A stretch of DNA of 64,000 nucleotides, from the NCBI GenBank assembly GCA_020891255.1, contig BQFW01000002.1, positions 3,720,001-3,784,000 of the forward strand, in the 5' to 3' direction. A model generated the notes under the pieces. The model was not told the DNA's origin and did not search any database. It worked only from the letters and a program-made list of their open reading frames with translations. Made by a program: the position numbers and the translations under genes. This DNA comes from Entomortierella parvispora E1425. Its lineage: Eukaryota; Fungi; Mortierellomycota. Positions 23,770 to 43,300 of this stretch are shown one piece after another (the stretch's first letter is position 1; the number at the start of each line of letters is the position of its first letter).

Positions 23770-26700
23770 GGCTGCATCTCCATCGATGCCTCCGTGGGGT
23801 CCCTTTTCTATTCTGCCCAATTCCATGATTCCTTATTTCTAGAAACCTGGGCATCGATGACATGTACTTTGCCTCCGAGTCGGTCGAGTCGATCGCCAAC
23901 CATATCATGGCTCTCTATGGTGCAAAGATCTTTGCTTACACCAAGAACGACAACGGTCTCGACATCAACTTGGAGCGCGAGACCGAGGAAGGCGCCGTCT
24001 ACATCCACACCTCGCGCCCAGGTGTCTCTCAGCTCTATGGACCCCAGCACGAGAAGAGGTAAAACATTGCTTTTCCTGTCTTTTATTTTCTTTTGCTTGA
24101 AAGAAAAGCACTGGAACCGCACAAGTTTGTTTGGACTGGAGGATGTGTGGTTTGGAGTGACCCATGCAATGTAATTTGGGTTTCTGTTGTTTGCAGTCCC
24201 TTGCCGCATTGGTGTCGAGCCGCATTGGTGTTAGGAAAGAAGCCAAAGACAGGGGAGGGAGAGGGCAGGTGCGCGTTCATTTTTTTTCCTTCTTTTGTTC
24301 TGTTGTTTTGTGTATGTCATCGACCCAGACCTGGGACCCGTGTTCAATCCCTGGGGGCCTTTCTGGTGCAGTTTCGTCGTCATCGGGGACAGGACTTGCG
24401 TGCTACTTTACGGTTTAGCATTTTTTTTTATTTTCCTAACTCCACACGCTGCCACGATCTGATCTACGAATGGTTCCATCAATTGCCCCCAGGTCGCTAT
24501 TTGAATTGTGACTAGGATGAGCAATGCCAACGATCCAACGACGCCAGCGCGCAAGAGCATGGGTAGTGGGGGTAAAGCAGTGCCAAGGGGGAACGCAAAC
24601 TGCGAGTGAGGGTTGAGTGCGTGAATTTAATAGAACGTCACGAATGGATCAGAGATGCGGGGGACAGGGGAGATCGAATTCTCTCGTCCGTATTGTCTTG
24701 CTTGATTCAAGATCGTGCCATGATCCAACCGACTCACCCTACTACGGCTTCAATTGGCCGTTTTTCTCCAATAGAATCGACTCAAAGTACCTCGACGTCA
24801 GCAACACGGAACGCGCGTACCGTCTGGAGTCTTACCGCTCCAAGGGAACTGTTTCGTCCTCATCCTCCACTCAGCTCCGTACCTACTTTGTGCGTGAGTG
24901 TTCCTTTGTGAACCCCGCCCCCACCAAGGAGCAGGAGAATGACATCCGCGAGACCGCTGACAAGTCCTTCCTCGAGAAGGCCACTGACAACACCCTCGAG
25001 ATCTACTCGAGCGTCATGAAGACCGCCTTGAGCCGCACTGGACCCGTCATTGAGATGTTTGAGGTTGAGGGCTCCCGCGAGCGTCGCCTCGTCATTGCCT
25101 ACAAGCAGCAGACCACCCAGTCCTTCTTCTCTGCTATTTCGGATTTGTACCATTACTACGACTTGTACTCGACCCGCAAGTATGTCGAGCAATTCTCCAA
25201 CGGTATCACCATCGTCTCTCTCTACTTGAACCAGATTCCCAAGTCGACTGCTCCCCCAATTGAGCACTCAATCCACCAGATCATCAAGGAGGCCTCTTTG
25301 ATTTACTGCTTGCCAACTACCCCTCTCCAGAGCTTCTTCCAGACCAACAAGTTGTCAGTCCAGGAGTCGATTTACGGTTACATTGGATGGATTTTTGCTC
25401 AACATTTCTTGAATCGTCTCGGAAACGAATACACCTCTTTGGTCAACATTCTGGATACCAACAACTCGACTCATCAGGATGTGCTCACAAAGATGAAGAA
25501 GCGTCTCCGTACCGATACGTTTACTCGTGATTACATCCTCGAGATTATCAAGATGTACCCCGAGCTCGTCAAGTTGCTGTACATCAATTTTGCCATGATC
25601 CACTACGTCAACCCCTCCATCAACTCGCTCAAGCCCACGCTCTCTTACCAGCGTCTGCGCACGGACAACATCTTGACAGAGGAGGAGCTGTACGAGAAGA
25701 TCAAGCGTACCACCTCCAACTCGCATGAGCTGATGGTCTTTGAATCCTTCTTGATCTTCAACAAGCACGTCTTGAAGACCAACTTTTACCAGCCCACCAA
25801 GGTTGCTCTCTCCTTCCGCATGGACCCCGCTTTCTTGCCCGAAATCGAGTACCCCACCAAGCTCTTTGGCATGTTCCTCGTCATTGGTTCCGAGTTCCGT
25901 GGTTTCCACTTGCGTTTCCGTGATGTGGCCCGTGGTGGTATCCGAATCATCCGCTCCCGTAACAGAGAGGCCTACTCCATCAACTTGCGCTCTCTTTTTG
26001 ACGAGAACTATGCTCTCGCCGCCACTCAGCAGCGCAAGAACAAGGATATTCCCGAGGGTGGTTCCAAGGGTACCATTCTCTTGGATGTGAACCAGCAGGA
26101 TAAGCCCTTGGTGGCTTTTGAAAAGTACGTGGACGCCATTTTGGACTTGCTCATCTTGGGACAGACCCCCGGCATCAAGGAGCGCATCGTCGACCTCTAC
26201 AGAAAGCCCGAGATCTTGTTCTTTGGCCCTGATGAGGGTACTGCCGACTACATGGACTGGGCCTCGGCCCATGCTCGCGAGCGTGGCGCTTCGTTCTGGA
26301 AAGCCTTCACCACTGGCAAGTCGCAGTCCTTGGGAGGCATCCCTCACGACACCTATGGTATGACCACCCGCTCTGTCCACCAATATGTCCTCGGTATCTA
26401 CCGCAAGTTGGGACTCAAGGAGGAGAACTGCACCAAGCTCCAGACCGGAGGACCCGATGGTGATTTGGGATCGAACGAGATCAAGATCTCCAAGGACAAG
26501 ACCTGCGGTATCGTCGATGGTTCCGGTGTCTTGTACGATGCCGAGGGTATTGACAGGACCGAGTTGCATCGTTTGGCCGAGAGCCGTTTGATGATTTCCA
26601 ACTTTGATGTGTCCAAGTTGTCGCCCAAGGGATTCCGTGTGTTGGTGGATGAGGTCAACGTGAAGTTGCCCTCGGGCGAGGTCATTGATGACGGTCTTTC

Positions 26701-27433
26701 GTTCCGTAACAACTTCCACTTGAACTCGATGGTGCACTGCCAGGTCTTTGTGCCCTGCGGTGGTCGTCCCGAGTCTGTGGATCTTCAGAACGTGAGCCGT
26801 CTTTTGGACCATGAGAACCACCCCCGTTTCAAGTTCATTGTCGAGGGTGCCAACTTGTTCTTTACGCAGGAGGCACGTCTTCGCTTGGAGCGTGCCGGTA
26901 CTGTCGTGTTCAAGGATGCATCTGCCAACAAGGGAGGCGTGACCTCGTCCTCGCTCGAGGTCTTGGCTGCCTTGTCCTTCAACGACGAAGAGTTCGCCGA
27001 GCACATGCAGGTCACGGAAGATCACATCCCCGCTTTCTACCAGGACTATGTCAAGGAAGTGCAGACCATCATTGAGAGAAACGCCCAATTGGAGTTTGAG
27101 GCTCTCTGGCGCGAGCACCAGCGGACAAAGACGCCTCGTTCCATCTTGTCCGATGACTTGTCTCTTGCGATCGTGAAGTTGAACGAGAACCTGCAGCACA
27201 CTTCGCTCTGGGACAACCTTCCCTTGCGTAAGGTCGTCTTGGAGGAGGCCTTCCCCAACTTGTTGTTGAAGCAGGTTGGCCTGGACACCTTGATGAAGCG
27301 TGTTCCCGAGAACTATGTCCGTGCCATCTTTGGATCTTATCTCGCTTCCAGATTCGTCTACAAGTACGGAACCGAGCCCAGTCAGTTTGCCTTCTTTGAG
27401 TTCATGACTCCTTACTTCTCCAAGGTCCAGTAA
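23301..27433 (+). CDS. GDH2: NAD-specific glutamate dehydrogenase (large fungal type), ~1019 aa; exons 23301-23485, 23843-24058, 24775-27433
   Basis: GFHLRFRDVARGGIR, KNKDIPEGGSKG, FFGPDEGTAD, GGIPHDTYGMTT, QTGGPDGDLGSNEI, EGANLFFTQEAR, KDASANKGGVTSSSLEV. Confidence 0.97.
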
Positions 27434-27717: not shown

Positions 27718-29229
27718 CTAAAAGACACCGTTGGATCGTAAAAAGTTGTAGGAATGGACGAGCAAACTCTGGTTGGCAATCAAGTTGTGGCCCTGGTTCT
27801 TCAAGACGGGTTCCATGAACAAAGAGGCCGTGGTCAAGTTGAAGATCCAGGTCATGGCGATCAGGATCACGTCCGGTACGCGGACCTTTCGACCAATGGT
27901 CGAGTCCAAGATCTGGGAGACGATCGTGCCGGCACCCTGGATCAAGAAGAAGGCCGTCATGTGGCCGGGACGGATTTGCCACATGCCAATCATCATGTAT
28001 TCGTGCATCAAGCCCGACATCAGGAAAACACCCATCACAGGCAAGATCCGCTCGGCCGTCTTGGCCATTGCCTTGTTCTTGGTCTTGGGCGTCACGTACT
28101 TGTGCAAAAAGTGATAGGTGGGCTTGGCTCCCAGATCCACCCAGATGTACTGGAAGAGATGGTGCCATTGTTGCCAAAAGACGCGTGGCGAGGTGGCCAG
28201 ACCGGGGAAATAGTGCGTGACGAGGGTCCATTCGGTATTGCGGATCTTTTCTCCAGTGACGTTGGCCCAGATGATCATGAGTGTGTAGTTGGCCAGAGAA
28301 ATGTCAAAAATGACCATGGCCGCCACGCCAATCCTGACGGGCAATTGACCCAAGGTCGAAAAGGTTTGGATTTGGGCAAAGTCGATAAAGCTCATGCAAA
28401 AGACAATCACATCTACCAAGGCGGCGTAAAAGAGCCAGCGAGGAAGGTAGACGCTCCAGTGCTGTGGGTTAGGGTCCATGGGCGGGGTGTAAATCTGCTT
28501 GACGGGTTTGCCCTTCATCGCGATAGGCTTGGATGCTGTTGTTGCTGTGGTGGATGAGGTGGTAGTGGAAGTGTTTGTCGTAATCGAGTGGGTATCATTA
28601 GCGGCTGTTGTGATAGTGGCTGTTGTTTTCGTAATAGCATCCTCGTTCTTTTCGTTCTCGAGCTCCTTGTTCTTTTGCTCCACCTTGTGGGCAGCATTTC
28701 GCTCGAGCTCCATGCGAAGTCTCGACTGTTGCTGCTCGAGTTCGAGCCTTTGGAGTTGTTCTTTGCTCAAGGGGATCTTGCGGAAGGGCTCCCAGACCTC
28801 TCTCCACCAGTCTTCGAGGTTCATGGTAGGTTCTTTGCCGGTTCTCCAGGGGCGGACGTAATACAGGTCGATCATTCGCATCAATACACATCCACAGGCA
28901 CCCATATGGACCAATTGCAACAGTGGAGAGTTGATGCTCGAGGTGATCAGGGGGAAGACGGTCAATCCTAGGACAAGAGGTGCGGCCATGGCCTGTTTTT
29001 GTTGGAGGTTGAAGGGCAAAAGGAGGAGGATGTAGAGTCCACCGCCAAAGATGAAGAAGATGGAAAAGTAATAGGCGTCTGTCAAGCCGAACTGGAAGGC
29101 GTTCTTGTTTTGGAGAAGGAGACAGGGCTCGACAGGGAGCTTTTGAGGAAGGGCATTAAAGAAGGCATTGTTGGTGTATTGGTTGAGGGTGGAGAGGAGC
29201 CTCGTTGTTGAAGCGGTGAGGACCTCCAT
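27718..29229 (-). CDS. Membrane-bound O-acyltransferase (wax synthase/MBOAT_2-like), single exon, 503 aa
   Basis: Multiple TM segments; SPRVFWQQWHHLFQ and FLMSGLMHEYM, the latter carrying the catalytic His of MBOATs. Confidence 0.85.
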   Translation of the reverse strand: MEVLTASTTRLLSTLNQYTNNAFFNALPQKLPVEPCLLLQNKNAFQFGLTDAYYFSIFFIFGGGLYILLLLPFNLQQKQAMAAPLVLGLTVFPLITSSINSPLLQLVHMGACGCVLMRMIDLYYVRPWRTGKEPTMNLEDWWREVWEPFRKIPLSKEQLQRLELEQQQSRLRMELERNAAHKVEQKNKELENEKNEDAITKTTATITTAANDTHSITTNTSTTTSSTTATTASKPIAMKGKPVKQIYTPPMDPNPQHWSVYLPRWLFYAALVDVIVFCMSFIDFAQIQTFSTLGQLPVRIGVAAMVIFDISLANYTLMIIWANVTGEKIRNTEWTLVTHYFPGLATSPRVFWQQWHHLFQYIWVDLGAKPTYHFLHKYVTPKTKNKAMAKTAERILPVMGVFLMSGLMHEYMMIGMWQIRPGHMTAFFLIQGAGTIVSQILDSTIGRKVRVPDVILIAMTWIFNLTTASLFMEPVLKNQGHNLIANQSLLVHSYNFLRSNGVF

Positions 29230-31679: not shown

Positions 31680-32619
31680 ATGTCACCTCACAACCTAACT
31701 GCCACAGCAGCTGCTGCCTCTGGTGCCTCTGCCTTCCCCATCCGCTGCAAGGGACTTCTCTTTGACATGGTAAGAACAACCCCTTCCCCTTCTCACCGAA
31801 GCATTGACTCGATCTGTGTGCCCCTCCCCCCCCCCCCCCCCAACAATGGACTGCGCTATCTGGATAACACCCTGGTCACAATCACAAAAACCTTGCTTTG
31901 CTCACCCCCAAATCTCAATTCCCTTTTTTTTTTATGATATTCCTTGACGATCCTCGGTGCTCTCTGCTCTTCAGGATGGCACTCTGATCGACACCACCCC
32001 CATTGTGGAGCGCCACTGGAAGATCTGGTGCGAGGCCCACAACGTCCCCTATGAGAAGCTTATCGCCACCTCCCACGGTCGTCCTTCTTTTGAGATCATG
32101 AAGGAGTGGGCACCCGACCATCTCCAGGAAGAATACCAGACCCGCGCTTACCTGGACAAGCTTGAGGGGGCTGTTGCTAACGACTTGGACGGCATGTTCT
32201 TGATCCCAGGCACCAAGGAGTTGTTGAAGACTGTCCCCAAGAGTCAGTGGGCCGTTGTGACCTCTGCAGGATACGAGATGGCAGTTCAGAGATTTCAGCA
32301 GATGGACTTGACCACACCCCCCATCTTGGTCACCGCCAGCCATGTCACCCGAGGTAAGCCTCACCCTGAGGGCTACATGTCCGCCGCCAAGCAGTTGGGA
32401 TTGGACTCCAAGGATTGCGTAGTCTTTGAGGATGCACCCGCCGGTATCAGGGCCGGTTTGGCTTCTGGCGCCAAGGCTGTTATCGGTATGAACACAGGAA
32501 CGATGCCATTGGATCATTTGGTCGAGGCTGGTGCCCACCCCATTGTCAAGAGCTTTGACGAGTTGACATTCTCGTTCCTGCCTGATGGATGGATCGAGAT
32601 CAATAAGAGAGTGGCTTAA
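31680..32619 (+). CDS. HAD-superfamily (IA variant 3) sugar/glycerol-phosphate phosphatase, DOG/GPP-like; intron 31770-31974
   Basis: Motif I LFDM|DGTLID is split by the intron; motif II VVTSAG; motif III GKPHPEGY; motif IV VVFEDAPAGIRAG. Confidence 0.9.
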
Positions 32620-34405
32620 AAAAAGGAGAACGGGCGAGAAGAACCGGACTCTCTAATTGCACATCTCTTTGTTATCATACTGTTTTTTTGTCAAGATAAG
32701 ACACAACCTTCTTATTTCCTCTGCTGTAACATTACTCTATATAAAAAAGATGTTGAAATCGGATTGGACACGTCAAATGGCCTTGTCGAAAGGAGAGAAT
32801 CCTGGGTATCTGGAGAGATCGGCATCAAAGCGTTTGCGATTGGGTAGAGAGAGCAATTGTTACGCCCAATGCTTTGCACGCGGACGGGTGCACAAAGGCA
32901 ACACACGCATTGAGAAGAGAGCAAAACCCTTTCCCCTGCAGCGTCGTCTCAGAGTCCATGCCCCTTGGAAGGGGGAGGGTGGCCCTTACGGTTCAGATTT
33001 GTAAAAAAAAAAAAAATGTCAATCACAACCAGACTAGGATTGAGCTCCCAAGGAGGAGCAACAGGGTTGCCAAAAAAGTGAAATTGTATCGCTCTTGAAC
33101 GTACTATCCGACCTCATTCCTGCACAAGAACGAGACTGGTGAATGGCGAATGTTTGTAGCGGTTCTCCACGTGCCGAGGCATGGAAAAGGAATGGGGAGG
33201 GTGCCCTACGAGAGAAGTCATATTTGCGGATGCGTACTTGTGGAGATGTAGATACGATGAGATCCTCTCCCCCTTGGCCACATCGGGTGGTCGGTCGGTC
33301 CCCCTCATAGTTCTGCACCATAAAAAAATTCATGAAGGTGGTGTTTGCGGGTATGGTATCATTCCCACATTCTTTGGCTTGACTCCATCCACGACGCTCC
33401 CTGCCCAACGTGGTACAAAAATAGAAGATGCATCTAGAAACCTCGCGTGGAGCAGAGCCATCGTTGCTGCTTCTTGCTTCCCAGGTTTGGCGCCTTGGCT
33501 GTCCTCCTACCAACCTTACATACTCCTTCTGTGTCTCAGAGTTGCACTGCACGTTCAAGTCGACGGCCAAGGGGTCCTTTCTACCTCTCATCTGGCCCAA
33601 TCTAGAGAGAGAGAGGATGTCAGCCAGGGGAATTTCTTGCCGCTCCTTCGTTCTCTTTGTCCCTCCCCCTTTCGGATGTGTTGAGAATTCCAATGCCTCC
33701 TGAACGCGTTTTTTACCCTTTTTTTGCCCTTTCTTTTCTATGAGCCGCCTCCGCTGCTGGCTGGCTCGATTCAATTCCCCCCACTCGAGCACCCCTCCTC
33801 TCCGTCCCCAAAATAAAGAGTGACCTTCTATTCTTCCTCCAGCTCTTCGCAATCTGTCCTTCCTTCTCCTTCTACATTCCTGGATAATTGGATTCGATAC
33901 CTGTCGCTGCTGATCCAGTCCAGTCCAGTCCAGTCTGTCCGACGCGTTCCTGGGATTGGACCCTTTCTTCTCTTTTCCTTTCCTTTTTCTCTCTTCTTCC
34001 CTCCACTCTCAACCTCCTTCCGTTCCGCCAATCCGTCAATCCTTGTCCCACTCTCACTCTTGTTTTTTTTTTTTGCCACTCTTGATACTCCGTCATTAAC
34101 CTACACGACGACAACAACAACAACAATAGCATCAACATTTGACAAAAAAAAAAAAAAAAAAAACCAAAGTCAAGAGAGAGGAGAAAAAAAGACCGACGCG
34201 TTATCTATTTTATTTTAAAGTACTCTTCTCTCCTCCACCTATCCATTCCATCCAAAGAGAGAGAGAGAGTTGTAGTCCGAACCATACCTTCCATCTTTCC
34301 TCCTCTCCTTTTCTCCACCATTCCCTACTTCGGCTTTATCACATCTTGTTCTGCCAACACTGCCTTTACCTGTCCTCTTTGCCCTACAGACCTCCGTTTC
34401 ACTCC

Positions 34406-37298
34406 ATGCCGCCCCAGCCGCCAGAGGAGACCTCGGTCTTGAGCCATCGATCGTCCAACCAAGATCCAGAGTCGGGATTGATCTTGCATCCTCACCCAAA
34501 GGATCCCTTGGCATACACCACGTCGTCATCTGTTACCCAGGGCCTAGCGGGTCTGGGCTTGGGAGGTCTTAAATCGGCGCCGGTGCCCACCAGTCTTCGT
34601 CATGGAGCGACCTTGTCGATCGACTATAGTATGATGGCCCATCAGCCCTTTCAGCAGCACCATCAGCCATTGCATCCTGCTCGTCAACAAAACACACCGC
34701 AGCAGCAGCAGCAGCAGCAACAACCACAGTCGCTTCCACCACCACAGCAAGAACCACAGCACCAGCAGCAACAGCAACAACAAATGTTGATGAATGGGAA
34801 TGGTCTGAGCAATGGATATCATCATCACCACCACCATCACCACCACCCCTATTCGCCCTATGGAACGCCTTCACCCGTGTTTTCCAATTACTCGCCTATC
34901 GAGACCTTTCATTCGGCGCATGGCTCACCCATGATCCCAATCGTGAGCGAATACAAGTCCCCACCCGCATCACCTTCTATCGATTTGGCACATTTCCGAA
35001 CCGTGGCCTCTATAGCCAGCTCCTCTGCCGCTGCCGCCGCCGCCGTGGTCGCCACGACGACGTCCAACACGAGTGTTTTAAAGAACTGTCCAGAGGCCAT
35101 GTTCAGTAACAATCGTAGTCTGAGCGCCAGCAGTAGTACCACCACTAGTAGCAGCACAAGTCCTACCCTCAAAGCTCCACCACCTTATTCTCCTCCCGAC
35201 ACCGCCAACGGGTTTTATGGCGTGGGTCGAAGAGGTAGTGTGGTTGGCGGGATCGCCAGGGCCGCCGGTGGGGCCTTTGGTTGTGGTGTGGGAGGCACCA
35301 GTGAAGGTGTTGGCTTGATTTCCTCCTATGTGTCCATGTGGAAAAAAATATCCTGGGTCATCTTTACGATGGGCATCTTCTTGATGCCGTACGCGGTCCT
35401 CAAGGCCTGTTTTCATGTCCAAGTCTCTGCAGGCGCTTGGCAAACGTCCCTGACCTACGGTATGTTGATGGCGGTGGATTTCTTGGCCGTGATCACGTTC
35501 TCGGCCCTGAACCGCCGTCGCGTGAAACTGCGGGTGGAAAAACGGGATCCTCACTGGGTGGGACTCTCGACAGGGATCCTGGCGGTCGGTTATCGAGAGG
35601 ACCCGGTCCTGCTGGAGGGCTGTTTAAAGAGTTTGAAGGCGATCCGGTATGTGAGGAATCAGAGGGTCCTGTTGGTGGTCGACGGTAATGAGAAACAGGA
35701 CGAGTACATGGCCCAGATCTTTATGAAGGTCTTTGAGAAACAAGGCGCGGCTGTCTTCCGACCGGATTTCTTGTGCATGGACCGGTCGCCTAGTGACAGG
35801 GACCGTGAGGAATTGGTCCGACAGATTGCCTACCATCCCGGACCCGTCTGTGTGATGCAGCCCCATCGTGGTAAACGTTCGGCCATGTACACTGGTTTTG
35901 CGGCCTTGCAGCAACAGGGCATCGAGTCTGTGGTCGTCACGGATTCGGATACATATCTGGATCCAGCCGTCTGCAAAGGTAAAAAATACTCGGTTTTTTT
36001 GGAATGCCACCACGAGATCAGGAGTTGGAGCAACCCAAAAAAAAAAAAAAAAAAAAAATCTCGAGGGCAGATCCGGCAGAAGACTCTCAACTAACCCACA
36101 CGCGCCCCCTTTTTTTTTCTATCTCTAGAGCTGGCGTTTGCATTGGCAGAGTCGCCAATCGTTGGTGCAGCCACAGGAGATGTCAGGATCTACAACACAG
36201 GCACCTGGGTCAGTTTCTTGTCTTCCCTTCGGTACTGGTTCGCGTTCAATCTCGAGCGCGGTGCGCAGTCGTACCACAGTGTCGTCAATTGTGTGTCGGG
36301 TCCGCTCGGTATCTACCGGATGACGATCGTGGCCGATGTGATGGATGCCTGGGTCAAACAATCCTTCCTCGGCGTCCTCTGTACCTATGGCGATGACCGT
36401 CATCTGACCAACCTGGTCTTGCGTGAAGGTTACAAAGTCAAGTACTCGCACTACGCCATCTGTTACACCGACACGCCCATCCGTTTCATTGCCTGGGTGA
36501 CCCAACAGACCCGGTGGTCCAAATCCTTCTTTCGCGAAATCCCTATTCAATTGGGGTGCATGCACCTGCACAGTCCTTGGATGACCTACGCTTTGTTGTA
36601 CCAACTGATTTACCCCATGATGATGGTCTATAACCTGGTCAATTGCATTTATTATGGAACCGGCTCTCAGATCTGTTGGTGGTTAGTTTCAATCTCCTTT
36701 GTGGGCCTGATGAAGACTGCGTACGCTGTCAAGGTCACGGGCGAGAAGAAATTCTTCTTCACGACCATCTATGGGTTCCTGTACATGCTCGGCTATGTCC
36801 CGGCAAAGATCTATGCTGCCTTGACCCTCTACGATAACTCTTGGGGAACTAGGTAAGAAACCCTCGAGTCCTTCCTCCTTTCCTATTCGCTCGTTTGTTA
36901 CTCATCTCAAACTTCTCATTGTCCTGCCAAAAAAAAAAAAAAAAAAAAATAGTGCGCGTTTGATCCGCAACTTTACTCAACTTCAAAACTACCTGGCTCC
37001 ATTCACTTGGGGCTTGATCCTATTCTTCGGCGTCCTTCACGACCCAGCCCGGTACTGGCAGCATGCCCCCTTGCCCGAAGGTCTTCCACCACCGATCTTC
37101 ACGGACAAAATGATCTTCCAAGCCCTCTTGTTTTTCGGCTTTTCTTACTTGCTCGCCTTTTACTGGTTCTTTGTAAGGACAGGCATCATCACCCGAGACT
37201 ACAAACGGGACTTTTCATACGAGGAACTGTTTGAGAACATGACAAGTTATATATTAGTCGACGGAGGCAAGCGTAAAGTAGCCCGGTTCGAAGTTTAG
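34406..37298 (+). CDS. Class I hyaluronan-synthase-like processive GT2 glycosyltransferase, ~880 aa; exons 34406-35978, 36129-36852, 36953-37298
   Basis: VGYREDP, VVDGN, QPHRGKRSAMYTGF, VVTDSDT (DxD), GAATGDVRIYN, RYWFAFNLERGAQS, CVSGPLGIYR, TYGDDRHLTN, QQTRWSKSFFRE (QxxRW), and WGT|SAR across intron 2. N- and C-terminal TM helices are present. Confidence 0.92.
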
Positions 37299-37383: not shown

Positions 37384-40300
37384 CTAAACCCATGCCATGG
37401 GTTCGCTATCCCACTCGAGTGTGGTGTCGTAGGTTTCTCCAGGGACCCACATTCCTTCGGTATCATGGGTGACACCACCACGGGGGGCTCTCGCTCCCCG
37501 AGTTCCTCTTCCTCTCACAGCCCCTCTGCCTCTGACAGCTCCTCTCCTCGGAGCTGACACTCGGGTCGCAACCACAGCGGCATCCTGCTCCATGCCCTCA
37601 TCTGATTCCGGGCCACCTGGGATGAAATCCGGCAACTCCAAGGCAATGCTCTGTCCTCCGGATCCGTCCTCACACAGCTCCTCCACCAAGGCCAGGTACC
37701 GTTCCTTCAGCGCCTTCACATCTTCTGCCTTGGCCAAGAGCTTTCCGGCTGGCTTCGAGACCGTGTTATTCAACCAAAACTTCAAGAACAAGGCTACCAG
37801 TTTCTCAATCATCAAAGCCTCTCGATGACCTTCGATCGCGACCTCCTCCCGGACGTCACGCAACAGATACTCGGCCAGATCCAGGGCCAAGGACAGAGAT
37901 GGTCCCCAAACCAACGAATGCTCGTCTGTTGGGTCCGCGACAGCAATAAAGGCATTGGCCATCTGGCCTGCCACCCTTTGAACAGTCACTACAGCAACAG
38001 GTGCGGTCAAAGCCACCCTCATAAAGTCCAGGTAGACAAAGGGTCGCGTCAGCACAAACTTGTAGAAGTCGTCCAGCGTTTTCGCAATCTGCTCTTGGAA
38101 CAGTCTTTGGATTGCGGGACTGAGTGCCTTCTCGCTTGCTCTGGCATTGGCCGCTATAATACAAAGGGAATTAGGGGAAAAGAAAAAAAAAAAAAAAAAA
38201 AGGAAGAGAATCAGTGCACCAATACAAAAAAACGTTTTATCCAGCTTACAATGATTTTTACCTTGAGCCAAAGGTCCAAAGTATCCAGAGTACTTCCTAG
38301 CAGTTTCGTTCCAGCGATCGTCCACATCCTTCAAAGTTCTGATGGGCTTTGTGTCACCCTTGCAGGGTACCTGGTACCACAGCCCTTCCATGACATCGCG
38401 AGGCAAACTGTGCTGGACAGAAAACGTCGAAAAGTCCAACTTGTCAAGCTGGCCATTGATCACACTTTCGATAATAAAGACCTCGGCGGGGGTGATACCC
38501 TTCGCCGGCGAGGCCTGCGACTTCTGGCTTTCGCTCATCTTCGCGCCCTCCTGGATGGCCCTACGGCTAGAGTCGACAATATCCCGAAGTGAGAACGAGA
38601 GAGGCGTGATCCTGGATCCGTGATCCACCATTCGCTTATACAACATGGGTCCAACTTCAGTTGGGAAGAGCTTCGCCACAGTGTAATGATCTCCTGCCAT
38701 AATGGCTGCAGCAATCATTGAGTCAGGTCCCTGGGTCCATCCTGATTCCTTGGCGCGCTTCACGATGGGCGTCAAGAGGGTCAAAATCGACGCCCACACT
38801 TCCTTGGAAACGACGGCTGAACGAGTCGCTTTAGCCTTCGCATGGGATACCTCGACGTTCACTTTTTGGGCTATAACGCCGGCATGGGTCCAATAGAACG
38901 CAGGAGGGCCTTGGCTGGCTAGGCGCTCTACAAACGCGCTAATCTCTACCAACGGAATTCGACCGGTGCTCTGCTTCAGGATCATTAGTCCCAGGTCATC
39001 CAAGTGAACCCAGTCCAGCAACTCTTCACGGGGTTCCAAGATTGCCCGCCCAAGGAAAGCAAACAGATCCGCACTCTTGTTAACAAGGCTGTTTTGGATC
39101 CAGCCTTGAACCTCGTTGAAATCGGCAAGATACTTGTTACTGAGCTCGGCGATCCTAACCAAGATCCTGAAGGCCTCTTCGTTGATCTGAGTCGCAGTCA
39201 TGGAGTTCTGAGGCTTGAAGTTGAAGATCTCCCTGGAGAGCACAATGTTCCAGGTCACAGGTTCCAACGTCTTTGTCATGAGCGGCTTCACAATATCTGA
39301 CTGCTGGCCTGAGAAAGACCCTGCTGCTTGAACCTTTTCGAAATTGCTCAACAAAGCGTTGGATCCCAGGTTCAAGAGGCGGATGCGGTCTTCCATAGCC
39401 CGTTGACGAAGGGAACGACGCAAGGATCGGTCCAAAAACTTGTCTGCCATATCTTGAACTACACCTGCCAGCTCGTTCCAGGCCTGGACCCCATCTCCGC
39501 CATTTTCCAGAGCTCCCTGCGCCTCTTTGCCGACACAGAGCGAGATTCCTTGGACCAAGAGCATCCAGAGTTGATGTGGATCCTCCTCCAAAGAAATCTG
39601 AGCTGCCTGTTGACGCCAGTCCTTTGCAATTTTGACGGCGTTTCGGGGTGTGAACCAGTTCTCCGAGAGAATCATCACCTGCAAGGCAACAGTACGGAGC
39701 TGGACCAGGTCCACATCTTCAGCATCCTCACCGGCAAGAACCGCGCACATGGGGTAGAGCACCTCATCCACATAACGCTCGACCAAGCCATAAGGGATAC
39801 TGATCACCGCTAAATCTGCCAATGTCGCGCTCTGGACCTTGGTGCGAGACACGTTCAAGACCACTCGAGGAGCATCCCCAATGCACTTTCCGGAGGGCGA
39901 GACTGCCAAAAGGACCGTGGCAACGCCTGCCTTCTTGTACGCGCTCGAATGTGAGATTTCGCTCAGGTAGGACCAGATCCATTCTACAGTATCTTGGTAT
40001 CGCTCCTCCTTGCCATCGGGACTGGCAAGCAGACCGAGAAGAGACTGCAAGATCACAACTCGAACATCGGAACTCAGGTCCTTTCGAACCCACAGACCTT
40101 TGATCATGTTGGCAATCCTAGAGTCCCTCAAGAGCGACATATTTGCACAGGCAAGACGCACACCCTCCTTTTGAATCGTCACCTTCAACTGGCGTTTTCC
40201 TGCTGGAGGGAAGAGTGGAAGGATATAATCGGGTCTGTTCTCCAATGGCACGTACTTAAGAGCATTCTCCACCGCGTGGATCGATGTGCGGGCTAAGTGC

Positions 40301-43300
40301 GAATTCAGATAGACTGGTGCCAGCAAAATCTGGAGGGTAGACGCGGGCTCCCCCATGGTGGGCAAGTACATCAAAAGAGCCTCCACAATTCTTGAGGGAA
40401 GCGAAGGTGTACTCAAGGCCTTGGCGACATCCTCCACATTGGTCGAAGGTAGGGTGACAAAGGCTTGGGCATGTCGAACCCGAGTCGCGAAGGGGATCGC
40501 AGAGTCGGTCATTCCAACCAGGTGTCTGGCCTTCAGCAACTCGCACTGATGAGGCGACAATCTTGAAGGGGTCTTGATGAAGAAGTCCCAGGCCTCTGGC
40601 TCCTCGACTTGGTTGAAGACGCCAGGGATGCCCTTGGTCATGGAAAGGTGCTCATCTGACAACAGGTCAGGTCGATCACTTGTCACAAACTCTTGGACAC
40701 GCCTAAGGTGGATCGCAGAGGGCGAAATCTTCAGCAGATCCTCCATGAGAGTCTCGTGCAGCTGTGGAGCCTTCTTGCCGTTTGGAAGCTTGCAGTCATC
40801 CACGAGATCCACATACTCGTCAAGCGCATTAGAGGACCGAATTCGCAGTTTCCTGAACCGAGTGAACCAGGTCAAGCTATCCCGATGATCACGAAGCCAT
40901 TCTTCGCTGTAAACGCGGCCGACGCGTTCTACATATGAAGTTTCATCATAGTCATTATTCCAGTTGAGGACATTTTCGTCGCCAAAGGTTTCCTCCTCAG
41001 CCTTAGCAAGGTTATCGATGATCCTTTCCAAATGAGCCGCCAATGTTGGAGATTTTTTCCATCGCCAGCCCAATTCGGTGTGCATAGCACGGCAGGCGTC
41101 CCGGTAAACGCTGTTCTGGCATCTCCTGAACGTCTCAATGTCCTCCTCCTCTTCGTAGGGGTTCATCAGGCTCTTGACTGACTTCCAGCGAGAGTTAAAG
41201 ACGTTCAGTTTAGCTTTTACAAACGCTTCCTCTTCACCCTCCTTGATAATAGGTTGACCCCAGTCTCCACCCTCGGTCTTTCGAGTCTCCTCTTCCTTCG
41301 CCAGAACACGACGTCTCTCCATCTCTTGCTCCTCATCACGATCATTATCCGAGTAGTTGGCCTCGGTGACCATCAAGCTGTAATTGATCAAGGCCATGGA
41401 CTCGCCACGGGAAGCAACCTGACGTCTCCAGGGGATCTCGGAGCCGACATGATAGAAGGGATGATCAGGCCTGCCGACGAAACGCTTCCATGCCTCATTT
41501 GCAATCTTGTCCAAAAACCGAGTAATACCAGACACTGGTGTAATCGCGGCGGCATTCTATACGGTGGATAATAGGTCATGAGCAAGATGGAACGCAGAAA
41601 GAACGAAAAAAAAAAAAAAAAAAAAAAAAAAGATTGAGACTTACCCTCGAGTCCATGGTAAGATAGAGAGAAGCCAACTCTGTTGCCTGCTCCAGTGTCG
41701 CATTGTCCAAGTACTGCCTTGGAACACAGTTGTCGTCAGGCAGCAAATGCTTCGAGAGTGATTGGAGATTAGGCAAAATCTCATTGCGAATCCTAAAATG
41801 AAAGAGAAAATCGATTTGTCAGAAGTTTGTTGCCATTGGAGGAACTCAACGATGTGTTGCTGTGAGGATACTTACTTTGGGATGAGCCACTTCAAGGTCA
41901 AAAGCCATTCTTGAACACTGCCAACAGCTCGAGTTGCATTCAGAATGGCAACGATCCACTTGAGACGGTCCTCGAATGCTGGCTTGCTTGTTTCCTTGAC
42001 CATTAGCTCACGAACTTCCGGAATACGGATATCCAAATACGCAGCCCAGTTTGCACTGTTGTCACCCAGTTCCACATCCTTTTCCGTTTTGTCTCCAAAC
42101 ACTTGAGGGAAGACAAACTCATGACGGAGCTCAATGTTGGTGCACAGTGGCTCTAGAATAGGATACACTGCCTCTCCTTGGTTCTTGGACAAAAATGTCT
42201 TGAAACCTGGATGAGCCACTATCCACATCACAATATCGTCCCTCTGTGCGCTTGTCACGGAGGGGGCGATGGCCCTCAGATGGTTGATCCAAGAGGCATC
42301 GAGTTTGAAGGCCGGAACAGGCTCATTCAAGCAGCGCTCCACGACGTCCGCAAACACATCCTTGTTATCCCAGGCAGGGATGGAGCTGTATGGCTGTACC
42401 AAACCGTTATCCGGGATGTTATACACGCTCATATCCTTTGGTGCAAGCACTCGGAACAAAGTTTCCACTGCTAGGACGACAGCAGCATCAAGACGCGTCT
42501 TGTGTCGGATCATACCCTTGATTTGATCGTAGAAGACTTGACCAAGCGGAGGGAAAGACGCGAGTTGATTCCCAAGGAGAGGGGTCGTAAACTTTCGAAG
42601 AACGAGGGCTTCCAGAAGGATCTGGTTTGGATAGCTGGACTTGTAGCTTTGCATGGCGGATTGAATCACAAGAGCAATTAAATCCTGCAGTGTCTCGTAG
42701 AAGTAGGAGGCCGAGCTATTGCGGTCCTTGAAGGCAGAGCAACCAGACAGGCGCTGGACCAAGTTGCTAATGCCCTGAACAGCAAAATTGAAGATGTAGT
42801 CGATGCCGGGTCTCCCGAGGGTCAAATCGGATTCATTTTCGTCAATCATTGAAATGGCCCTCCGTATCAAACGATCAACAACAGGTCCACGGCAGCAGTT
42901 GAGCAAGCTGATTGGAGGCACTTGACCAGTCTTGAGTAATCTGCCGTCGCCTCCAGTCAAGATGTGTTGCATGTAGTCTTCCAGGAGAGCACCGTCATCA
43001 TCGCGGTGACACCAGTACCGAATGGCTCGTTTCGTGCTATGTAGGCCCTCAGGAATCGCCACATTGTACTGGTTCTTGCCAACTTTCCTGTACGATGTTT
43101 CCTTCAATACACGCATTGTACGCTCGGGATCATGCTGGAGGAAAGAAAATAGGTTGTTTTCAATCAGAAGTGCCAGCTTTGGTGACCGCTGCTCTGGGTC
43201 GGACGTCAACCAAGGGAAGAGCGGCGGGAATGTTTCTTGGAGCGTGAGCACCACGTCTTTGATGTTCTCTCCTGCTTCTGTAAGATTCGCCTTTCGTTGG

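Follow-up and report, generated by a model that had tools for sequence, protein, structure and literature searches.

A class I hyaluronan synthase family gene resident in the fungus Entomortierella parvispora, and its likely product

The question raised by a 64,000-nt stretch of the Entomortierella parvispora E1425 genome (assembly GCA_020891255.1, contig BQFW01000002.1, positions 3,720,001 to 3,784,000; hereafter the window, in which position 1 is the first letter) is whether a gene resembling the hyaluronan synthases (HAS) of animals and chloroviruses belongs to that family, and which polymer its product would make in this soil fungus. The gene encodes a member of the membrane-integrated, monomeric class I HAS family, the non-reducing-end-elongating type of vertebrates and chloroviruses, within which it is part of a fungal branch that is large and well conserved. 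[quoted passage not shown]

In recent structural work the class I, non-reducing-end HAS figures as an enzyme that vertebrates and large DNA viruses possess (PMC12987647). The fungal HAS-like family is not new, being widespread in non-Dikarya fungi, labelled as such in databases and discussed by Crisp et al. (2015), who used fungal homologues when human HAS1-3 were 'reclaimed' as fungus-to-chordate transfers and whose supplementary table gives the fungal entry UniProt I1C447 as a best hit, with 268 bits (PMC4358723). Many orthologues of the gene in the window are already automatically named 'Hyaluronan synthase 3' in NCBI and UniProt. The entry I1C447 is presumably from Rhizopus. A preliminary description of the window had reported a HAS-like gene in a fungus; the identity stands, and the novelty that it implied is overstated. 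In the study of Gonçalves et al. (2016), HAS served only as an outgroup and non-chitin-synthase GT2 proteins were discarded (PMC5122149). The literature search returned no study on the product, expression or role of the HAS-family enzymes of early-diverging fungi.

Family assignment and gene structure

Exon 2 alone, searched against the Protein Data Bank (PDB), matched Xenopus laevis HAS1 (XlHAS1; E = 3e-63) and the Chlorella-virus HAS (CvHAS; E = 6e-49), and the C-terminal half of exon 1 matched CvHAS (E = 2e-26), whereas no PDB chains other than HAS were matched by the window exons at E < 0.01. A family profile built from twelve diverse members and run against the PDB chains scored 522 bits with XlHAS1 (profile positions 14-550 on chain 34-588) and 476 bits with CvHAS, both full length, compared with 35 bits (E = 4e-8) for chitin synthases and no significant match to cellulose synthase in that search. 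As in class I HAS, catalysis is assigned to one GT-A (GT2) domain, in which DxD, GDD(R) and QxxRW are all present, and the positions of DSD, GDDR and QQTRW are invariant in 74 family members. Likeness to the characterised HAS greatly exceeds chance and is far above likeness to other GT2 synthases.

The sole substantial NCBIfam match was rhizobial NodC (TIGR04242), a GT2 relative whose similarity (E = 1e-44 to 1e-46) extends through the C-terminal two thirds of the part that holds the catalytic site. Only profile positions 113-392 were matched, and the scores were 153.1 bits for the Gryganskiella cystojenkinii orthologue (P0002) and 159.1 bits for a short paralogue from Linnemannia elongata (P0019), against an equivalog cut-off of 550. 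Pfam, uninformative on its own, assigned only generic GT2 families and Chitin_synth_2 (30.8 bits, cut-off 27) over 130 residues, and the Pfam scan gave nothing for exon 1 or exon 3. No protein named Cps1 and none from Cryptococcus was found among the named matches of the homologue searches, the Cps1 sequence itself not having been compared.

Structural comparisons were made on an AlphaFold2 (AF2) model of P0002, which is 84% identical to the window protein, built from a 74-sequence alignment, and all structural values given here refer to this model. The predicted local distance difference test score (pLDDT) of the core, residues ~310-860, was mostly >90, and residues 1-301 were disordered. A Foldseek search listed 13 HAS entries first, with target-normalised TM-scores of 0.82-0.90 over 508-547 columns, followed by a large drop to cellulose and chitin synthases with TM-scores of ~0.3. 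The best superposition was with the Paramecium bursaria Chlorella virus enzyme (7SP6 and related entries; 0.85-0.90, root-mean-square deviation (rmsd) 3.0-4.5 Å), and the same fold was found in XlHAS1 (8SMM, 8SMN and 8SMP; 0.82-0.84). The chitin synthases Saccharomyces cerevisiae Chs1, Candida albicans Chs2 and Phytophthora sojae Chs1 share the principle of a processive membrane GT2 enzyme, together with QxxRW and a gating loop, but superposed with TM-scores of 0.29-0.42 and rmsd >13 Å. The membrane architecture of HAS was matched throughout, with two N-terminal transmembrane helices, three interface helices and, at the C-terminal end, four transmembrane helices. As modelled on its orthologue, the window protein has the complete HAS architecture, including a WGTS-type gating loop.

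Together, the profile scores (522 and 476 bits with HAS, 35 bits with chitin synthases, 153-159 bits with NodC against its cut-off of 550) and the TM-scores (0.82-0.90 with HAS, ~0.3 beyond) agree with the initial reading of the gene as HAS-type rather than chitin-synthase- or NodC-type. Neither profile nor structure grouped it with the chitin synthases.

The three exons (Table 1), when joined, form an 880-codon frame with zero internal stops and with the junction codons ...AVCK-E-LAFAL... at intron 1 and ...WGT-S-ARLIRN... at intron 2. Residues 1-880 of this model align end to end with the 879-aa orthologue P0002 at 84% identity, and exon 3 is supported because the model is collinear with P0002 over its whole length. 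The gene bounds proposed earlier proved exact, and all motifs quoted with them, including RYWFAFNLERGAQS, NCVSGPLGIYR, GDDRHLTN, QQTRWSKSFFRE, WMTY and WGTSAR, were located in the spliced protein, the last spanning intron 2 as had been proposed. The spacer between ...GAQS and NCVS... is five residues long and not four. Both introns carry an A run a short way upstream of the 3' splice site region, of 22 nt in intron 1 (36037-36058) and 21 nt in intron 2 (36929-36949), and similar A/T homopolymers flank the gene upstream (~34140-34170) and downstream (from 37300).

The N-terminal extension is rich in S, P, Q, A, G, T and H, carries a Q8 run and an H9 run, and has no counterpart in the solved HAS structures. 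Such a fungus-specific disordered region might serve in regulation, localisation or targeting.

The public annotation of this gene is both truncated and misnamed. The public protein P0001 (766 aa), whose contig in E. parvispora measures 3.99 Mb, agrees with model residues 1-765 at 100% identity. Its gene model (34406-36856) runs into intron 2 and ends there, losing exon 3, that is, 115 residues including transmembrane helices 5 and 6. The record bears the name 'mannitol-1-/sugar-/sorbitol-6-phosphatase', of which an upstream gene for a HAD-family hydrolase is probably the true owner. The same 'WGTR-stop' truncation was seen in at least 12 further Mortierellaceae models (examples are P0008, P0024, P0027, P0031, P0036, P0050, P0053-P0058 and P0078), and several orthologues are misnamed 'ATP-dependent RNA helicase'.

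Functional residues and the probable polymer product

Residue numbers from two structural papers (PMC12987647 and PMC11750622) were mapped on the PDB alignments, with chain index minus published number of +1 for CvHAS and +13 for XlHAS1, both checked on DxD, GDD(R) and QxxRW. All 26 functional positions checked are conserved in the window protein, and almost all are invariant across 52 Mortierellomycotina and 42 other fungal sequences. Kept from CvHAS are Y91, E93, H174, K177, D201, D203, Y299, G300-D302, R341, W342 and R348, and from XlHAS1 R287, Y288, F292, R296, C307, C337, S385, K448, W491, T493 and R496. In CvHAS, Y91 and H174 are uracil contacts, E93 is a second-metal ligand, D201 and D203 are the aspartates of DxD, K177 and R341 sandwich the GlcA carboxylate, and Y299, beside the GDD motif, is the priming-loop tyrosine (PMC12987647). 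In XlHAS1, the GlcNAc acceptor collar consists of Y288, F292, C307, S385 and GDDR, the interface-helix arginines R287 and R296 stabilise GlcA in the channel, and R287, R296 and K448 render the channel electropositive (PMC11750622). The corresponding window residues, K490 and R653 for the GlcA-carboxylate contacts and R559, R568 and K720 for the basic channel residues, are all present and are kept in 40-42 of the 42 other fungal members.

With vertebrate HAS the protein shares DSD, GDDRHLTN, QQTRW-KS, the acceptor collar, the IFH1 arginines, the channel lysine K448 and the gating-loop W, T and R. Core identity is ~36-39%, and the disordered N-terminal extension of ~300 residues is found in the fungal protein alone. 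The reported UDP-GlcA-, metal- and priming-loop residues of CvHAS are all identical, whereas the viral enzyme is without the N-terminal extension, and introns are present in the fungal gene. The gating loop is WGTSGRK/R in vertebrates and WGTRG in the Chlorella-virus enzyme (PMC11750622). The fungal loop, WGTSAR-L, keeps the mutagenesis-supported W, T and R, with alanine in place of glycine and leucine in place of the final basic residue. The fungal proteins are a mosaic of states. They have the viral state at CvHAS positions 174 (His) and 299 (Tyr), neither of which occurs in any of the 8 chordate-cluster sequences, vertebrate HAS having Trp and Phe there (PMC12987647), and they share the channel lysine K448 with chordates (7 of 8). 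Only 3 of the 7 giant-virus sequences have that lysine, and of the 118 unnamed ones only 34.

Judging by its homology to the solved enzymes, the protein would sit in the membrane with its GT-A domain in the cytosol and would bind UDP-sugars with Mn or Mg at DSD. The GDD aspartate would act as the base, the acceptor sugar being held on the QxxRW tryptophan while the WGTS-type gating loop closes the active site. The growing chain would then pass through a channel lined with basic residues; processive synthesis and export of a hyaluronan-like polymer is the most likely function, and the product may join the GlcA-containing wall or matrix of these fungi.

Wall chemistry fits such a scheme. All Mucoromycota sampled, Mortierella elongata among them, had GlcA in their walls, which makes the UDP-GlcA supply assumed in the preliminary description plausible. 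Of four Zoopagomycota only Basidiobolus had it, the Entomophthorales lacking it, and of the Ascomycota sampled only the Hypocreales (PMC11170279). The same pattern parallels the distribution of HAS-family genes, which occur in the early-diverging clades and in a Dikarya clade with Fusarium, Ilyonectria and Beauveria. A GlcNAc/GlcA polymer is considered most likely for two reasons. Strong constraint acts on the acceptor collar, on the contacts with the GlcA carboxylate and on the basic residues of the channel, and wall GlcA occurs in just those sampled lineages that carry the gene.

Several points weigh against this reading. The searchable literature holds no biochemical or chemical evidence of hyaluronan in any Mortierellomycota or Mucoromycota, and the classical acidic wall polymers of Mucoromycota are mucorans, not hyaluronan (PMC11170279). 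HAS from vertebrates and viruses can use UDP-GlcNAc by itself (PMC12987647). The GlcA-contacting residues do not vary anywhere in the wider family, many uncharacterised lineages included, so that their conservation is no proof of GlcA use. The gating loop departs from the vertebrate motif at two positions (A for G, L for the final K/R), and the predicted structure is that of the orthologue rather than of the window protein. Among the neighbours in the window, as assigned by Pfam, no UDP-glucose dehydrogenase gene adjoins the HAS-like gene, whereas the Chlorella virus encodes its own.

The acceptor collar bears directly on an alternative considered unlikely, namely that the enzyme makes a different acidic zygomycete wall polymer, for instance a GlcA-rich homo- or heteropolymer resembling mucoran or mucoric acid, instead of strict hyaluronan. 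The GlcNAc collar of XlHAS1 (Y288, F292, C307, W382, S385 and GDDR) is fully kept, which argues that GlcNAc is still one of the two sugars, and the gene is also present in chytrids and Neocallimastigomycota, beyond the Mucoromycota and Basidiobolus in which its distribution parallels wall GlcA. A polyuronide would agree with the description of polymers of GlcA and fucose (mucorans) as acidic wall components of Mucoromycota, for which the searchable literature yielded no synthase, and with the acceptor promiscuity of CvHAS reported in PMC12987647.

It is also rather improbable that the protein, although a HAS-family member by descent, would turn UDP-GlcNAc in vivo into nothing but chitin or short chito-oligosaccharides, as an extra chitin or chito-oligomer synthase. 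HAS do hydrolyse UDP-GlcNAc and use it alone to prime (PMC12987647), the walls of early-diverging fungi are chitin-rich, NodC is the only substantial NCBIfam relative and Pfam gives generic GT2 families and Chitin_synth_2 alone. On the other side, K490, R653, R559, R568 and K720 are kept under strong purifying selection, the chitin synthase match is very weak in both profile and structure, and these fungi already have many true chitin synthases according to the literature.

A GlcNAc/GlcA polymer as the product of this enzyme leads to a wider and more tentative proposal: that early-diverging fungi (Mortierellomycotina, Mucoromycotina, Basidiobolus and zoosporic lineages) make hyaluronan or a very close GlcA-GlcNAc polymer with it is possible, although short of probable. 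If they do, a hyaluronan-type matrix would be no speciality of chordates and viruses: either it was ancestral in opisthokonts, or fungi invented it and chordates later received it from them. The enzyme would then be the missing synthase for part of the GlcA in zygomycete walls. It would also bear on the interactions of fungi with plants, endobacteria and animal hosts, and would supply a concrete outgroup to the debate on how chordate HAS arose, by transfer according to Crisp et al. (2015) or by ancient vertical descent.

Residence in the genome and neighbouring genes

Intron positions were compared by exact-block mapping. Both are identical in three other Mortierellaceae genes, namely Gryganskiella P0002 and the long and short copies of L. 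elongata. Intron 1 (profile column 231) is common to P0002, P0005, P0019 and Basidiobolus ranarum P0060, and intron 2 (profile column 472) is common within Mortierellaceae. Exon 2 has 241 residues in all four Mortierellaceae genes compared. Introns are absent from the gene in Mucor lusitanicus and number six, at other positions, in Polychytrium. Over a 578-codon core, the ratio of nonsynonymous to synonymous substitution rates (dN/dS) was 0.035 against Gryganskiella and 0.065 against the short copy of L. elongata, with dS of at least 1.5. The GC content is flat across the window, and the block of MBOAT_2, HAD, HAS-like gene and large convergent open reading frame (ORF) is syntenic with the Gryganskiella locus L012.

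Judged from these comparisons, the gene is old, functional and vertically maintained within Mortierellaceae. The view that it is resident and not a contaminant held up on shared introns, synteny, an exact match to the E. parvispora assembly and purifying selection. That the gene is a contaminant, was recently acquired by horizontal transfer or was inserted by a giant virus is highly improbable: relatives do occur on giant-virus metagenomic contigs and the best-known non-animal HAS is viral, but two spliceosomal introns are shared across Mortierellaceae, the first also with Basidiobolus, synteny is kept, GC equals that of the neighbours, the viral sequences are 28-38% identical and stand outside a Mortierellomycotina clade with 100% bootstrap, and dS of at least 1.5 between genera points to long residence. 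A pseudogene was ruled out along with contamination and recent transfer, on the even GC, synteny, shared introns and low dN/dS.

The neighbouring genes form no sugar-nucleotide pathway cluster. The short L. elongata paralogue, P0019, follows ~1.9 kb downstream of a gene for a TPT/UAA-type nucleotide-sugar transporter on the same strand (locus L014), and the long paralogue (L013) has other neighbours.

Table 1. Features of the HAS-family gene, its neighbours in the window and the L. elongata locus L014 (L014 positions are those of that locus)
Feature	Position	Strand	Remarks
HAS-family gene, whole	34406-37298	+	3 exons, 880 codons + stop; ATG at 34406, stop codon at 37296-37298
Exon 1	34406-35978	+	residues 1-524 and base 1 of codon 525
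Intron 1	35979-36128	+	150 nt, GT..AG, phase 1
Exon 2	36129-36852	+	241 codons; second half of GT-A, interface helices, transmembrane helices 3-4
Intron 2	36853-36952	+	100 nt, GT..AG, phase 2
Exon 3	36953-37298	+	end of gating loop, transmembrane helices 5-6, C-terminal tail, stop
N-terminal extension, ~300 residues	34406-35305	+	low-complexity composition; orthologue pLDDT <50 over residues 1-301
Transmembrane helices 1-2 (~residues 311-378)	35336-35539	+	P0002 AF2 helices 310-335 and 343-377; aligns to CvHAS N-terminal transmembrane region
Cytosolic GT-A catalytic domain (~residues 388-640)	35567-36475	+	split by intron 1
GYREDP motif	35588-35605	+	GT-A domain
QPHRGKR motif	35858-35878	+	GT-A domain
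DSD motif	35939-35953	+	residues 513-515, GT-A domain
RYWFAFNLERGAQS motif	36230-36271	+	
NCVSGPLGIYR motif	36287-36319	+	
GDDRHLTN motif	36389-36412	+	GDDR = residues 612-615
Interface helices and transmembrane helices 3-4	36482-36823	+	includes channel lysine K720
QQTRWSKSFFRE motif	36503-36538	+	on interface helices; QQTRW = residues 650-654
WMTY motif	36578-36589	+	
Gating-loop motif WGTSAR	36842-36959	+	W763-R768; split by intron 2
Transmembrane helices 5-6 (~residues 771-842)	36966-37181	+	P0002 AF2 helices 770-800 and 816-841
NAD-specific glutamate dehydrogenase gene	24617-27433	+	Pfam GDH_2nd E = 3e-89, ELFV_dehydrog, Bac_GDH_CD; unrelated to HAS-like gene
MBOAT_2 gene	27718-29229	-	Pfam
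HAD-family hydrolase gene	31957-32619	+	Pfam HAD_2 E = 9e-20; ~1.8 kb upstream of HAS-like gene
Large convergent ORF	37384-41535	-	no Pfam match
L014: TPT/UAA-type nucleotide-sugar transporter gene, short paralogue P0019	4636-6121 and 8001-10256	same strand	

Breadth and phylogeny of the family

An exhaustive HMMER search over representatives of 50% identity clusters found 333 of them at E ≤ 1e-30; at the looser limit of E ≤ 1e-10 the number was 1212. The family is present in essentially all sequenced Mortierellaceae, usually with two copies per genome, of which one is long (~830-940 aa) and bears the N-terminal extension, the other being short (~640-680 aa). Other fungal members were found in Mucorales, Umbelopsis, Bifiguratus, Endogone, Basidiobolus, Neocallimastigomycota, many chytrids and Gonapodya. 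Amphioxus HAS2 is part of the chordate cluster, and nine giant-virus metagenomic loci (L001-L009) carry relatives that are 28-38% identical.

A neighbour-joining bootstrap tree of 230 family members, with no outgroup sequences, supported Mortierellomycotina (100%), this group with Basidiobolus (100%) and with Endogone added (99%), as well as Mucoromycotina, a chordate clade and a Dikarya clade (100% each). The backbone had ~0% bootstrap, and no sister lineage to chordate HAS was assigned in this tree. The B. ranarum proteins P0059 and P0060 (L017) group with Mortierellomycotina at 100% bootstrap, while Mucorales and Umbelopsis form a separate clade. This placement suggests either an ancient fungal paralogy or a transfer between Basidiobolus and Mortierellomycotina.

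A HAS-family protein from the annelid Owenia fusiformis (P0173, on a 40.8-Mb scaffold) falls beside the chordate cluster with a weak bootstrap of 22. If genuine, it would conflict with the claim of Crisp et al. (2015) that metazoans other than chordates lack HAS, and would favour ancient vertical descent over fungus-to-chordate transfer.

The scan of bacterial genomes for the signature motifs of the family gave two contigs only, both from metagenome-assembled genomes (MAGs) labelled 'proteobacterial', one of them 292 kb long. Their HAS-family genes (L010, 3001-4368; L011, 3001-4251) are 40% and 31% identical to the query, respectively, and that of L010 pairs with the Logan protein P0140 at 100% bootstrap inside an otherwise eukaryotic part of the tree. 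These genes could reflect mis-binning or a real transfer into bacteria.

Cps1 of Cryptococcus neoformans, compared here by description only, is also a fungal GT2 enzyme tied to hyaluronic acid. It is a reported hyaluronic acid synthase homologous to the pneumococcal type 3 synthase, as cited in PMC9676211.

The only Dikarya relative found was the GT2 clade represented by P0230 and P0331, which includes Fusarium, Ilyonectria and Beauveria and whose members are automatically named 'hyaluronan synthase 2' or 'chitin synthase'. This clade shares a superfamily with the window protein (E ~1e-60 to 1e-70), aligns mainly with the C-terminal half of that protein at ~34% identity, and forms a separate clade with 100% bootstrap. 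The clade possibly overlaps the published chlorovirus-like chitin synthase/Chs8 class. It is not equated here with the published Chs8/UNGD cluster, the Fusarium oxysporum locus examined having no adjacent UDP-GlcNAc dehydrogenase gene. Basidiobolus has members of this Dikarya-type clade as well (P0195, P0391 and P0393).

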